Part shown: one piece after another, positions 35,350-40,058 of the stretch
How the letters are laid out: each line of letters begins with the position of its first letter
How positions within the stretch are numbered: position 1 is the stretch's first letter
Assembly (NCBI GenBank): GCA_937625935.1
Contig: OW569376.1
Span: 186,001-250,000 of the forward strand
Length of the DNA: 64,000 nucleotides
Origin: Tetramitus jugosus
Lineage: Eukaryota > Protista > Heterolobosea
Direction of reading: 5' to 3'
The notes under the pieces: model-generated
What the model saw: only the letters and a program-made list of their open reading frames with translations
Database searches by the model: none
Told to the model about the DNA's origin: nothing
Program-made: the position numbers and the translations under genes

Positions 35350-37083
35350 ATGACAGAGGATCAACAACAACAACAAGTAGAAAACACGACTGTTCCATCA
35401 TTGGCAGAAGAGACTGAAGAAGATCGTCTCAAGAGAGAAAAAAAGGATAAAAAAGAAGCTGAAAAAAAGAAGCGACGTGAAGAGCAAAAGCTCAGAGACA
35501 AGGAGAAGAAGAAGCTCAAGAAGCAACAAAAAAAGGACACTCCTTCCACTGCTAGCACCACTTCTTCTTCAGGAGCCAATAAAAAAGTCAACTCTGATGG
35601 CATCACCATCAAGAAGACTGAAGATTTTGGTGAATGGTTCACTCAATCCATTACCAAATCAGAAATGATTGAGTACTATGATGTCAGTGGATGTTACATT
35701 TTGAGACCATATTCGTATGAGATTTGGGAACAAATCAAGTCATTTGTCGATGGTGTCATTAAGAAGATGGGTGTCAAGAATGCCATGTTCCCACTGTTTG
35801 TCACCAAGAGTGCACTTGAGAAGGAGAAGGCTCACGTGGAAGGATTTAGTGCTGAAGTCGCTTGGGTCACCAAATCTGGTCAAAGTGATTTGGCTGAGCC
35901 ATTGGCCATTCGTCCAACAAGTGAAACCATCATGTACCCTGCATATTCCAAGTGGGTTCGTTCCTACAGAGACTTGCCACTCAAGTTGAACCAGTGGACC
36001 AATGTGGTTCGTTGGGAGTTTAAGCACGCTGTTCCATTTATTCGTTCGAGAGAATTCTTGTGGCAAGAAGGACACACTGCATTTGCAACTGAACAGGAAG
36101 CAGGTGAAGAAGTGTATCAAATCTTGGACATGTACAGACGTGTGTACGAAGAGTTGTTGGCCGTTCCTGTTGTCAAGGGAAAGAAATCAGAGAGTGAAAA
36201 GTTTGCTGGTGGATACTATACTACGTCGGTGGAGGCATTCATTCCAACCAATGGACGTGCTGTCCAAGGAGCCACTTCTCACTGTCTCGGTCAAAACTTT
36301 TCCAAAATGTTTGACATTCAGTTCGAATCCGAACAGGGAGGTGAGAAGCAATACGCTTGGCAAAACTCTTGGGGTCTCACTACGAGAACCATTGGTGTCA
36401 TGGCCATGGTTCACGGTGATGACGACGGTGTCGTATTCCCACCAAGAGTCGCTCCAACACAAGTTGTTGTTGTTCCATTGTACTTTAAGGACCGTGTGGA
36501 CAATGACACATTGAACAAGAAGGCCAAGGAGATTTATGATGCATTGATTGATGCAGGTGTGAGAGCTGAGCTTGACACGAGAGACTACAAGAACCCAGGC
36601 TTCAAGTTTAGTTATTGGGAAGTGAGAGGTGTTCCATTGAGAATTGAACTCGGTCCAAAGGACTTTGAACAAGGTCAAATCACATTGGTCAAGAGATATA
36701 ACCGTGAGAAGTTTACCATGTCATTGAACGAATTTAAGGGAGCTGATGTTCAAGCTGTCTTGGACAACATTCAACACGAAATGTTTGAAAAGGCAAAGGC
36801 TGAGAGAGACAACAGAATGCCAAACGTTCACACATGGGCCGAGTTTATGGCCGAGTTGAACAAGAGCAATATGTGTTTGGCACCATGGTGTGACAGACCA
36901 GAATGTGAAGAACAAATCAAGCAAAGATCCAAGCGTGACAGCAATGAGCAAGAAGCTCTCTTGACTGCCAGCGCAAAGAGTTTGTGTATCCCACTGGAAC
37001 AAAAGGAATTGCCAGCCAATCAAAAGTGTGTCAACTGTGAACACGATGCCAAGTTGTGGTGCTTGTTCGGTAGAAGTTATTAA
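35350..37083 (+). CDS. proS: Prolyl-tRNA synthetase (eukaryote/archaea type)
   Basis: IEYYDVSGCYILRP, IRPTSET, REFLWQEGH, QGATSHCLGQNF, QNSWGLTTR, C-terminal FGRSY; TAA stop 37081-37083 abuts the transposon TIR. Confidence 0.96.
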   Translation: MTEDQQQQQVENTTVPSLAEETEEDRLKREKKDKKEAEKKKRREEQKLRDKEKKKLKKQQKKDTPSTASTTSSSGANKKVNSDGITIKKTEDFGEWFTQSITKSEMIEYYDVSGCYILRPYSYEIWEQIKSFVDGVIKKMGVKNAMFPLFVTKSALEKEKAHVEGFSAEVAWVTKSGQSDLAEPLAIRPTSETIMYPAYSKWVRSYRDLPLKLNQWTNVVRWEFKHAVPFIRSREFLWQEGHTAFATEQEAGEEVYQILDMYRRVYEELLAVPVVKGKKSESEKFAGGYYTTSVEAFIPTNGRAVQGATSHCLGQNFSKMFDIQFESEQGGEKQYAWQNSWGLTTRTIGVMAMVHGDDDGVVFPPRVAPTQVVVVPLYFKDRVDNDTLNKKAKEIYDALIDAGVRAELDTRDYKNPGFKFSYWEVRGVPLRIELGPKDFEQGQITLVKRYNREKFTMSLNEFKGADVQAVLDNIQHEMFEKAKAERDNRMPNVHTWAEFMAELNKSNMCLAPWCDRPECEEQIKQRSKRDSNEQEALLTASAKSLCIPLEQKELPANQKCVNCEHDAKLWCLFGRSY

Positions 37084-37096
37084 GGTGGCGGTCTAC
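37084..37096 (+). repeat. Left terminal inverted repeat
   Basis: GGTGGCGGTCTAC, exact reverse complement of 39755-39767. Confidence 0.9.
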
Positions 37097-37099
37097 CAA

Positions 37100-37130
37100 C
37101 TCCTCGTATAAATAGGGCTCCTCGTATAAA
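37100..37130 (+). repeat. Subterminal direct repeat 2 x CTCCTCGTATAAA
   Basis: Exact 13-mers at 37100-37112 and 37118-37130. Confidence 0.85.
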
Positions 37131-37698
37131 ATGATTTTTGTTTGAGAAAAAAGAAGCAAGATGTGGGTCGATCAAAAAACATCAGAATCCATACACAAGT
37201 GTTAATCATCCACAATACTGTGAATTCTCGGTTACAAGCAACACTTTCGTGCTTTGTGATTTCTCTGCGGCGGAGGTTCGGGCTTCTTTATTTGGGCCAG
37301 TGGACAGGAACATTGAAGCTCTCTGGAGAATACAAAAACACACTTGGATGATGAGTCATCCACACGTTGTCATTAAACAAGTTCTGAGTCAAAGATGCAA
37401 TACTTGGTAGAGTTTCATATTGGAGTCTCCTCCAGTAGATGATTTCGGTTGTTGTGTGTATTGGTTCAGAGGATGGACGATGGACGTTTTCTTTCAAGAC
37501 GCGAGATTGAACCACCCAAGAAGAAATAAAGCATTTGCCAAACGAGTAACGTCATCTTTCTGTTGCCTAAATCTCAGTTTCCTCTAAGCTGCGGAATTGG
37601 TGCAGTTGTAAAAATTTCCGTTGAGACTGTCTTTACAACGGCAACGGCCATCTACCTCGGTTTAAAAAGCGCTGTCTTTTTCGCTGTTTGATTCAACT

Positions 37699-37746
37699 CA
37701 CACAACAAATACAACACACAACAAATACACCACACAACAAATACAA
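37699..37746 (+). repeat. Tandem 16-bp repeat x3 (CACACAACAAATACAM) in the Fanzor leader
   Basis: Units at 37699-37714, 37715-37730 and 37731-37746, directly before ATG 37754. Confidence 0.85.
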
Positions 37747-37753
37747 TAACATT

Positions 37754-39682
37754 ATGCCACGAGGCGTGCCTAAGGACGGCAAGAGAAAGAGGAAGAGAAA
37801 AGCTGTCGAAAAGGACAAATACTCATCACACTATGTGGTCAAGGTCGGTCTGAAGTCTCTGTTGTTGCATCATCCAACTCTGTTACCAATCATACAAACT
37901 CAAGCTCTGGAGATTACAAGGATTGCTCTTCGACTCACAAGATTTATAAACATATTTGTTTTGAGGCACTTGGAGAACAATTGTGATATCCCTCTCTTGA
38001 ATCAAGGATTTATTCAACGAATCGGTTCAGTGTTGTTTGGACGCAAGTCGAAGACAAGAGACGATAATGTCAACCTCATCAACGGGTCTGTCAACATGGA
38101 TGACGTAACAATCAAGCTAAGGAAGATTTATGAGAAGATTTCCAAATCCATCAATTACGTTGCCAAGTCTCTCAATGTCAATATTTCTAACATGCTCAAG
38201 TTCACATTGGAACAAAGACTGAGAAAGTATTTGAGAGTGAGGATGAATCAATTGCACAATGACCAATCAATCCCAAGGTCTGAATACAGAAGAGTCATAG
38301 AATACATCATCAGAAAGTTGACATTCGCCACTCCAGTTTATGATTTTGTCAAACTGCCTCCAAAAGAGTTGATAGAGACTATTCCTGTGTTGATCCGAGA
38401 GGTTCGAACACTTGTTGGTGCTAAAGCTGACGAAGTGATTGATGAATCTTTTGTGAACAACAACACCAACAACATGCTGAAGTTTTACTGGCATGTTCAA
38501 CAGTTTCTGATTGGCAATGGAGTGAAATCATTTGCATTGTTGCCCTTGTCCCACTTTAAATGTAGATGCATGGAGATAGGTACGACGGACCTGATAGACA
38601 TGCTCCAACAGAAGAAGAAATCTGGAGGACAAAAGAAGGGAAATGTACAAGTAATTGAACCCATTGAATTGAAATACAATCTCGAGTGTTTGAATATCGG
38701 AACAAAGAAGATTCAAATCGACTCTATCAGAACTGACGGTATTCAAGCCTCAGTTGTTCTCAGACATCAACTCGTTGGCAATCACAAGAACAATAAGGCA
38801 AAAGAATCCAAGGGCCAGAAAGAAGCAAAGAAGAGAAAGAAAGAAACAAGTATGAACGAAGGTGCTGAATATTTGGTTGGGATTGACCCGGGTATTGTTA
38901 CGTTGGTGAGTTGTGCTGATTCAGATGGCAAGAAGTGGGAGTTGTCTAACAAAACATATAGACATCTGTCCCACCATTCAAAAAACTCCAAGCGATTGTT
39001 GAAATACAAAGCAGAATGGAACGAAATGAATGAGAAGAACTTGGATGAACTCCAAAACTCAATCAAACAGGCCGGTGTACCAACAAGTGGTCTGTTCCTT
39101 GAACACATCAATTCTGTAATGAAAGTCGAGGATGATTTGTTGAATTTTTATTGCACCCCAAAGGTGAAGAGACTGAATTGGGATAGCTATATAATGAGAG
39201 ATAAGACGATTGCCAATGTTATGAATGACTTTCGAAAGAGAGCAAATGGAAGAAGCATGTTAATTGGGATGGGCAATGCTGGTTTTGGTCATTGTTACAA
39301 AGGACATGCTCCAACACCAAAAGGAAAGCTATTGAAAAAGTTGAATGAGCACTTCAAAGTGAAAATGATCGACGAATTCATGACAAGTCAGAAATGTCAT
39401 CATTGCCATTCTCACATGAAGCCAGTCAAGCATAAGAGAATAGACAAGAATGGAACGTTGAATGTCTCTGTCGTCCGAGGAGTTAAACAGTGTGCAACCA
39501 CTAAATGTTTAGTGACTCACAACAGAGACATCAATGCGGCCAAGAACATGCTCCATCTACTGAGAACAGAAATGGATGGACAGTCACGTCCCGATGCCTT
39601 CAAGAGGAAGAAAAAGGTCGCAAAAGAATTAATCAAAATGGTGGAACACCTCCAAGGCTCACTCCATCAAGCTGCTATGTAA
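37754..39682 (+). CDS. Fanzor (Fanzor1-like) RNA-guided endonuclease, eukaryotic TnpB homologue, 642 aa
   Basis: N-terminal NLS-like KRKRKRK; RTDG motif; RuvC-I VGIDPG (codon 38885); RuvC-II strand LIGMGN with Gly at the usual Glu position and relocated Glu in IDEFMTS (39374); Zn ribbon CHHC...CATTKC; RuvC-III NRDINAAKN (39527). Confidence 0.92.
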   Translation: MPRGVPKDGKRKRKRKAVEKDKYSSHYVVKVGLKSLLLHHPTLLPIIQTQALEITRIALRLTRFINIFVLRHLENNCDIPLLNQGFIQRIGSVLFGRKSKTRDDNVNLINGSVNMDDVTIKLRKIYEKISKSINYVAKSLNVNISNMLKFTLEQRLRKYLRVRMNQLHNDQSIPRSEYRRVIEYIIRKLTFATPVYDFVKLPPKELIETIPVLIREVRTLVGAKADEVIDESFVNNNTNNMLKFYWHVQQFLIGNGVKSFALLPLSHFKCRCMEIGTTDLIDMLQQKKKSGGQKKGNVQVIEPIELKYNLECLNIGTKKIQIDSIRTDGIQASVVLRHQLVGNHKNNKAKESKGQKEAKKRKKETSMNEGAEYLVGIDPGIVTLVSCADSDGKKWELSNKTYRHLSHHSKNSKRLLKYKAEWNEMNEKNLDELQNSIKQAGVPTSGLFLEHINSVMKVEDDLLNFYCTPKVKRLNWDSYIMRDKTIANVMNDFRKRANGRSMLIGMGNAGFGHCYKGHAPTPKGKLLKKLNEHFKVKMIDEFMTSQKCHHCHSHMKPVKHKRIDKNGTLNVSVVRGVKQCATTKCLVTHNRDINAAKNMLHLLRTEMDGQSRPDAFKRKKKVAKELIKMVEHLQGSLHQAAM

Positions 39683-39771
39683 ATCCCGATTATGTAGGAG
39701 CGTTAAGGTGTCTTATCGGGAAACCATAATGTTTTTATTATGGCTTGATGGACAGTAGACCGCCACCTTAA
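39663..39771 (+). ncRNA. Predicted Fanzor omega-RNA scaffold (guide would continue from 39772)
   Basis: 10-bp stem 39663-39672/39743-39752; hairpins 39684-39690/39715-39721 and 39724-39730/39737-39743; 8-bp pseudoknot 39703-39710/39764-39771; position at ORF 3' end and element right end matches TnpB/Fanzor architecture. Confidence 0.75.
39755..39767 (+). repeat. Right terminal inverted repeat
   Basis: GTAGACCGCCACC followed by TTAA. Confidence 0.9.
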
Positions 39772-40058
39772 GGTATCAGAGTACAACTCGAAATAAAATA
39801 ACTAGTCATATTCATCAAACATTACACTTTCAGAAACAATAAAAACTTGCAGCAACAATTCTTACAAAATCGTTTGAACATTTCCTTTACATATTAACTT
39901 GAAGTCATCGGAAAACATATATGGTTTCCCTCGCATCCTATCGCAAGATTTTTCCCTCCCTCATACAGAGAGAAGATCACATAATAATCATCCAGAATAT
40001 AATAATAATAATAGCCATAATCACAATGAAAATAACTAGTCGTTTCGCCCTTCTCTCT

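Follow-up and report, generated by a model that had tools for sequence, protein, structure and literature searches.

A polymorphic Fanzor1 transposon of Tetramitus jugosus with Kolobok-type ends and a candidate Kolobok transposase

What moves a eukaryotic transposon that carries a Fanzor RNA-guided nuclease and no transposase, and what might the nuclease contribute to its spread? The question is raised by a stretch of 64,000 nucleotides from the heterolobosean Tetramitus jugosus (assembly GCA_937625935.1, contig OW569376.1, positions 186,001 to 250,000; hereafter the window), in which a Fanzor1 element occupies positions 37084-39767. Homing has been demonstrated for bacterial TnpB, and for the Fanzor element Spu-1 no transposase has been found that pairs with the nuclease. 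Our analysis suggests, with good but not complete confidence, that the element is a cut-and-paste DNA transposon, non-autonomous and with Kolobok-type ends, whose cargo is a Fanzor1 and its omega-RNA.

A preliminary description of the locus had reported a 2684-bp element with perfect 13-bp terminal inverted repeats (TIRs) and TTAA on either side, and this is what we found at 37084-39767. The left TIR (37084-37096, GGTGGCGGTCTAC; features lie on the forward strand unless stated) begins with GG, a Kolobok-type RR terminus that recurs on L025, a contig with a transposase, and the right TIR (39755-39767, reverse strand) matches it perfectly as an inverted repeat. Microsatellites aside, the TIR pair is the sole perfect inverted repeat of at least 17 nt in the window with arms at most 10 kb apart. 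TTAA stands at 37080-37083 on the left and at 39768-39771 on the right. Two 13-nt subterminal direct repeats (37100-37112 and 37118-37130, together 37100-37130) are common to L025 and to the copy on contig L001, and are probable transposase-binding sites. The following left region (37131-37753) is non-coding. Six-frame translation and comparison with relatives disclosed no transposase remnant in 37084-37753, neither a second copy nor a transposase was found elsewhere in the 64-kb window, and the element had no match in Rfam. The transposon had been called complete, with all its parts at this locus; that holds for the TIRs, the TTAA, the nuclease and the predicted omega-RNA, but the transposase is not at the locus and the element is non-autonomous.

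Evidence for mobility came from sequencing runs and from other contigs. A contig of run X1 joins 37079 to 39768, as expected of the site with a single TTAA before insertion. In a contig of run X15, 37086 and 39796 are linked through the first guide bases, which is likewise an empty site. Empty alleles with a single TTAA demonstrate that TTAA is a true target-site duplication and that the insertion is polymorphic. In addition, the same ends stand beside more than 10 unrelated TTAA flanks (L005, L008, L016, L019-L021, L024, L026-L029 and L032), and TTAA adjoins every right end and almost every left end of the copies, in a scan that itself required TTAA. The recent activity proposed earlier is thereby borne out, in multiple copies, by empty alleles in two runs and by identical TIR ends at unrelated flanks. 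The depth in the DNA-like run X3, about 50-320 inside the element versus 8-14 in the flanks (about 4-30x, contig depth not being copy number), fits a multi-copy family. Several copies are internal deletion derivatives; a widespread short form, found in L008, L016 and L026, has lost everything between the left region and the final 56 nt of the right end except for about 80 nt of RuvC-I coding sequence. Neither stem 1 nor the 5' strand of stem 2 of the predicted omega-RNA is left in it, and it is mobile but probably guide-less.

The target sites showed further peculiarities. The copy in L001 has TCAA on the left (L001:395-398) and TTAA on the right, either a mutated duplication or an insertion at a non-canonical site. 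In L028 (1677-1687) and in the left flank of L032, unrelated RCC1-like and DAP3 genes both end in TGTACCA-TTAA before the left TIR, which may hint, with n=2, at an extended target-adjacent motif (TAM) or at a target preference on the left side only. A palindromic CC-TTAA-GG preference was seen with three flanks and vanished with more flanks. About half of the 24 metagenome 17-mer matches were chance matches in bacterial genes, and 70 single 14-mer matches in viral contigs, which had neither Fanzor nor transposase, were attributed to chance as well.

Which transposase, then, would recognize these ends? Kolobok transposons, which are present in protists including Naegleria, are defined by TTAA duplication and 5'-RR..YY-3' ends, the latter distinguishing them from piggyBac, and the GG..CC termini of the element conform to RR..YY. 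Furthermore, the metagenome contig L025, found by a terminus scan, carries an identical 17-nt end together with both subterminal repeats; its terminal region scored 33, a value reached in 0 of 5000 shuffles, and chance 17-mer matches scored at most 10. Behind the shared end lies a frameshifted open reading frame (ORF) that matches PF20700 (E 1.3e-5; Atlas 0.95). A second transposase, on L034, is 46% identical to that of L025, shares the same LDFRWSQRRNALNG motif and continues with AAKNME, FVHDQD, LDIGHVAKN, a His-His-Cys cluster and RIESGNNS. Its motif order, namely D1, an S-x-x-ME-like motif, D2, DxxH, H-x3-H-x2-C and a terminal E, is the order of the published Kolobok alignment (PMC9587614), and by eye the motifs match the Trichomonas Kolobok-1_TV and Kolobok-2_TV rows (file 3 of that source) in both order and form; the nearest Atlas cluster of L034 is mostly parabasalian. 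The putative Kolobok DDD/E core with C/DxxH is split over two contigs, L025 providing the N-terminal part and first D, and L034 the remainder with DxxH, again as matched by eye. No relative of the candidate transposase was detected in the viral contigs, and a single-sequence fold of the transposase P0274 reached a predicted local distance difference test (pLDDT) value of 44, too poor for a structure search. Since L025 bears the same terminus and subterminal repeats before a transposase with Kolobok motifs, the mobilizer of the element is, to judge from these contigs, probably a Kolobok transposase.

The same Fanzor1 element could alternatively be moved by some other TTAA-specific transposase, from piggyBac or from the carrier family of the insect-virus Fanzor1 elements, with L025 sharing its ends by descent only. 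piggyBac too duplicates TTAA and is a listed Fanzor carrier, HAmv-1 and its relatives, for which no transposase is known, have TIRs of 13 bp and duplicate TTAA/TTAN, and L025 may stem from another genome. We nevertheless judge this alternative improbable, because the GG..CC ends are of the RR..YY type, by which Kolobok is told apart from piggyBac, and because L025 agrees with the element over the entire TIR and in the two subterminal repeats, far above the scores of chance matches. As regards piggyBac itself, the signs are against it: the termini are GG rather than non-RR (pyrimidine), and the linked transposase has no piggyBac Pfam match. The Fanzor carriers listed so far comprise Mariner, Sola2, MuDR, Harbinger, IS4-like, Helitron, Crypton, hAT, EnSpm, piggyBac and IS607 (PMC3627910; PMC10530073; PMC10711439; 2026 review PMC13565253), and no published link between Fanzor and Kolobok was found in the literature searched, which took in neither Repbase nor subscription journals. 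The probable link to a Kolobok-type transposase, and the natural empty alleles that make homing testable, go beyond that literature.

The cargo of the element is a Fanzor1 protein. As previously claimed, an uninterrupted 642-aa ORF without introns begins at ATG 37754 and runs to 39682, and the three catalytic residues and the CxxC...CxxxxC zinc ribbon are all at the positions given for them: RuvC-I D378 in IDPG (38885-38887; the DPG motif), RuvC-II E541 in IDEF (39374-39376; six residues before the first zinc cysteine, C548), RuvC-III D592 in NRD (39527-39529), and the TNB zinc ribbon with C548, C551, C580 and C585 (39395-39508). The N-terminus contains the basic run that had been likened to a nuclear localization signal (residues 10-16, 37781-37801), a putative function, and alignment of relatives placed the TDG motif of the WED domain, a Fanzor1 hallmark, at T327-D328-G329 (38732-38740). 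The DPG motif, the glutamate near the zinc finger and TDG are published Fanzor or Fanzor1 signatures. D378 and D592 are invariant among 91 relatives, and E541, the zinc cysteines and TDG nearly so; a frequent variant at 39376, within the E541 codon, is synonymous. The TNB match exceeded the Pfam cut-off, and the sole sequence match in the PDB was SpuFz1 (E 4e-14), with the TDG, DP, DE and NRD motifs in register. The AlphaFold model (pLDDT 91) retrieved Fanzor1 structures, representing three Fanzor1s, at all of Foldseek ranks 1-7 (E 1e-24 to 5e-16; template modelling score, TM, 0.56-0.72). Cas12f, TnpB and Fanzor2 were far weaker, with E 1e-4 to 1e-5 for Fanzor2 and TnpB and the best Fanzor2 at rank 43. 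An assignment to Fanzor2 of the IS607EU kind was rejected, as TM to ApmFz2 was only 0.22-0.29, the protein has 642 aa and an IS607 serine recombinase is lacking; the context is instead that of a non-IS607 transposon, an element with TIRs and a target-site duplication amid eukaryotic genes. By sequence, motifs and modelled fold, with a split RuvC and the enlarged REC lobe of the group, the protein is a Fanzor1, as the preliminary description held.

The nuclease belongs to a small clade whose close relatives are 98, 76, 61-63 and 43% identical, the remainder lying at about 25-30%. The ratio of nonsynonymous to synonymous substitution rates (dN/dS) was 0.115 against L001 and 0.16 against L005, which is 98.5% identical; the protein is therefore being maintained by purifying selection. 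The catalytic triad and the zinc ligands are intact in every close full-length relative, and RNA-guided nuclease activity is predicted for the protein. Besides, three 16-nt tandem copies at 37699-37746, just 5' of the Fanzor ATG, differ in number among runs. A sister Fanzor1 family (L002:2344-4568 and L004:1725-3897) is 62-63% identical and has a different right end (..CTACTCTAT), with neither TTAA nor a matching TIR. L002 is flanked by a 15-bp direct repeat with 1 mismatch (2344 and 4554), made up of the element's last bases and the first guide bases; it resembles the long duplications of CRe-1, and none was found for L004. A tree of the Fanzors, a quick version only, suggests that the L002/L004 lineage departed from the TTAA carrier.

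The right end of the element was described as structured and as the source of an omega-RNA. Indeed, 39670-39771 folds better than shuffled sequences (z -2.8), and the prediction of an omega-RNA gains support from the fold and from compensatory changes in the family. Predicted stem-loop 1 (39676-39696) has 7 bp, with arms at 39676-39682 and 39690-39696, and overlaps the stop codon; the 5' end of the RNA probably lies a few bases upstream of it. A predicted 6-nt linker (39697-39702) leads to predicted stem 2 (39703-39771), in which TTAAGGTG (39703-39710) pairs with CACCTTAA (39764-39771), that is, with the TIR end and the duplicated TTAA, the final bases of the predicted scaffold; an apical hairpin is predicted at about 39726-39745. 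The same two-stem fold was obtained for the window, L001 and L003 (z -2.8, -3.0 and -6.9, respectively), with UUAA paired in all three. In L001 the pairing of stem 1 is maintained despite base changes on one or both sides; the internal GTTAAGG is retained in L001, L003 and L007, the terminal CCTTAA even in L007, and pairing of the scaffold to TTAA persists among relatives at 37-76% protein identity. This agrees with published structures: the SpuFz1 omega-RNA has two stems and a linker likewise of 6 nt, each of the three Fz1 structures shows seven pairs in stem 1, and the scaffold includes the 3' duplication. A Fanzor1-like scaffold that includes the 3' duplication and a closing stem is thus predicted for the right end, in part with covariation. 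Because the duplicated TTAA is paired inside stem 2, the guide should start at 39772, as had been predicted; we place it at 39772-39786, its length of 15 nt taken by analogy to SpuFz1, and it differs at every other copy. By published Fanzor1 rules, the TAM would end in TTAA, so that the left TTAA would represent the predicted TAM or its 3' part (PMC13565253; PMC10711439).

Taken together, these features suggest how the system could work. A Kolobok DDE transposase encoded elsewhere would bind the TIRs and subterminal repeats, excise the element and insert it at TTAA with duplication; the duplication and the spread are observed, and the identity of the enzyme would follow from L025 and L034. A transcript of the right end would yield an omega-RNA of about 110-120 nt with stem 1, the linker, the TTAA-closed stem 2 and about 15 nt of flank as guide, which would be renewed at every new insertion site. 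Fanzor1 with its omega-RNA would recognize TTAA and then the flank. Since the left TTAA of the filled allele precedes the TIR, this target junction exists only at an empty site, whether left by excision or present on a homologue without the insert; the TIR behind the left TTAA has 6 of 15 mismatches to the guide, and no other TTAA site in the 64-kb window lies within 4 mismatches of it. If TnpB homing is a guide, a break at the empty site would be repaired from a filled copy, and the element would be restored or spread. The X15 empty allele lacks 14 nt at 39782-39795, positions 11-24 after TTAA, where Fanzor1 would cut; the deletion could have been left by repair and make the site resistant to the guide, but indels are numerous in this intergenic stretch of that strain.

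Several points weigh against this picture. L025, which may lie outside this genome, is frameshifted and its contig ends just after the first catalytic D (LDFRWSQRRNALNG), and no full autonomous element with two ends was seen; the Kolobok call is a by-eye motif comparison together with Pfam and Atlas matches labelled "Mutator-like". The covariation draws on 3-4 distinct sequences, and the omega-RNA, the TAM and cleavage are predictions for this element. In addition, X1 contains the empty allele alongside the filled one, although strong homing should remove it; with differences at 8 of 115 positions, the X1 empty contig may not be recognized by the guide. Depth was also low for the Fanzor contigs of the RNA-like run X2 (11-45, versus about 1300 for the prolyl-tRNA synthetase (ProRS) gene that adjoins the element). 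An empty allele that persists in the organism's own run and low depth of the Fanzor contigs in X2, as well as the many spread deletion derivatives (L008, L016, L026) without the ORF and most of the scaffold, would suit an element that is mobile while its Fanzor is a passenger without effective cutting in vivo, or a protein that only binds or represses, the transposase alone driving the spread. We regard this as a poor prospect, given that triad and zinc ligands are intact in all close full-length relatives, that purifying selection acts even between copies 98.5% alike, and that the pairing of scaffold and TTAA is retained in distant relatives. The complete proposal of a Kolobok-Fanzor1 partnership, in which a spreading family with a TTAA-built omega-RNA coexists with empty alleles that its Fanzor converts by homing, stands in our judgement about evenly between true and false.

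The site of insertion raised a further question. The host ProRS gene (35350-37083, 577 aa), whose best named matches are heteroloboseans at 61-62%, ends at the element: the left TTAA consists of the last base of a Tyr codon and the TAA stop, a circumstance missed in the preliminary description, and the insertion therefore leaves the ProRS protein intact. A contig of X2 (36733-37108) passes from ProRS into the left end at ProRS depth, and a poly(A) tail joins near 37554 in the same run as a loose end; the left 470 nt thus probably replace the ProRS 3' end, and host mRNAs that read into the left region may take a substitute 3' end from it. An insertion on the ProRS stop codon, probably supplying a new polyadenylation site, would hence have little cost to the host. 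In L016 and L024, host mRNA-like contigs enter the right end of the element in antisense, from a stop-codon TTAA.

It might be supposed that the element actively seeks out stop codons or the 3' ends of genes as a safe harbour, as 5 of 17 flanks show a frame of at least 331 codons whose stop codon is TTAA, compared with 6 of 318 one-sided TTAA sites in the window. However, the flank sample is biased: the contig series looks RNA-derived, and in 10 of the 11 contigs of the main flank series the host ORF stops 0-76 nt before TTAA and reads into the element. Selection against insertion in coding regions adds to the apparent excess of stop codons, and for L001 and L025 the nearest gene end is about 1 kb away. 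Gene-end contigs that read into the element thus point to transcript sampling and selection rather than to targeting, which we consider unlikely.

Elsewhere in the window, at 229-260, TTAA followed by GGTGGCG (TTAAGGTGGCG at 229) loosely resembles the left end of the element; a partner end was not found there, and the adjoining ORF (342-1298) has no Pfam match.

The element had been called possibly undescribed, which overstated its novelty: transposase-less Fanzor1 elements with TIRs and TTAA have been published before, and Spu-1 and the insect-virus elements share the layout. What is less usual, the probable Kolobok carrier, had not been raised. Spu-1 (Spizellomyces punctatus; SpuFz1; PMC10432273, PDB 8gkh) likewise has TIRs around one Fanzor1 ORF of about 640 aa and no transposase, with many near-identical copies, the same fold (TM about 0.7), a two-stem omega-RNA with a 6-nt linker and a right-flank guide, the RNA features being predicted here. 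The two proteins are only about 18% identical, Spu-1 has 30-nt inverted repeats and a CATA TAM in place of the 13-bp TIR starting with GG and the TTAA duplication, and Spu ghosts keep a working omega-RNA whereas the short derivatives of this element lose most of the scaffold. A candidate mobilizing transposase was found here and none for Spu-1. The insect-virus elements HAmv-1, SFav-1, HVav-1, HAgv-1 and PUgv-1 (PMC3627910; PMC10711439) also encode Fanzor1 only, between 13-bp TIRs and a 4-bp TTAA/TTAN duplication, and their RNA scaffold takes in the TIR and the duplication, as predicted here. They are viral, about 1.95 kb long and unassigned to a superfamily, and the likeness described is one of layout; unlike them, the present element sits on a chromosome of a protist and has a candidate transposase linked to it. 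GtFz1 of Guillardia theta (PMC10432273; PMC11423790) is a Fanzor1 whose TAM, TTAA(N), is the one predicted here, but no inverted repeats or transposase association have been reported for it, its third catalytic residue is N where the present protein has D592, and its omega-RNA is longer, at 150 nt. The Kolobok superfamily (Kolobok-1/2_TV, KolobokE/H/P; PMC9587614) shares TTAA duplication, RR..YY ends and short TIRs with the element, and, as matched by eye, the motif order of its DDE core with the linked transposase of L025/L034. Its reported accessory genes are KolX, a lambda-exonuclease-like nuclease, a RecQ helicase and a His-Me finger endonuclease, with no Fanzor among them (PMC9587614), and this element lacks a transposase of its own.

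These results bear on the role of Fanzors in their own eukaryotic hosts. A young polymorphic family, a public empty allele of this very site and a candidate transposase with the same ends make excision, cutting and homing each testable in this system. With this locus Kolobok probably joins the carrier superfamilies listed for Fanzors, and the known nucleases gain a divergent member, intron-less and 642 aa long, with a predicted TTAA TAM and a scaffold that can be read by covariation. If true, the Kolobok-Fanzor1 partnership would bring together in one system a transposase, a nuclease, its guide RNA and the natural target, and it might also name the carrier of the other Fanzor1 elements with TTAA and 13-bp TIRs.

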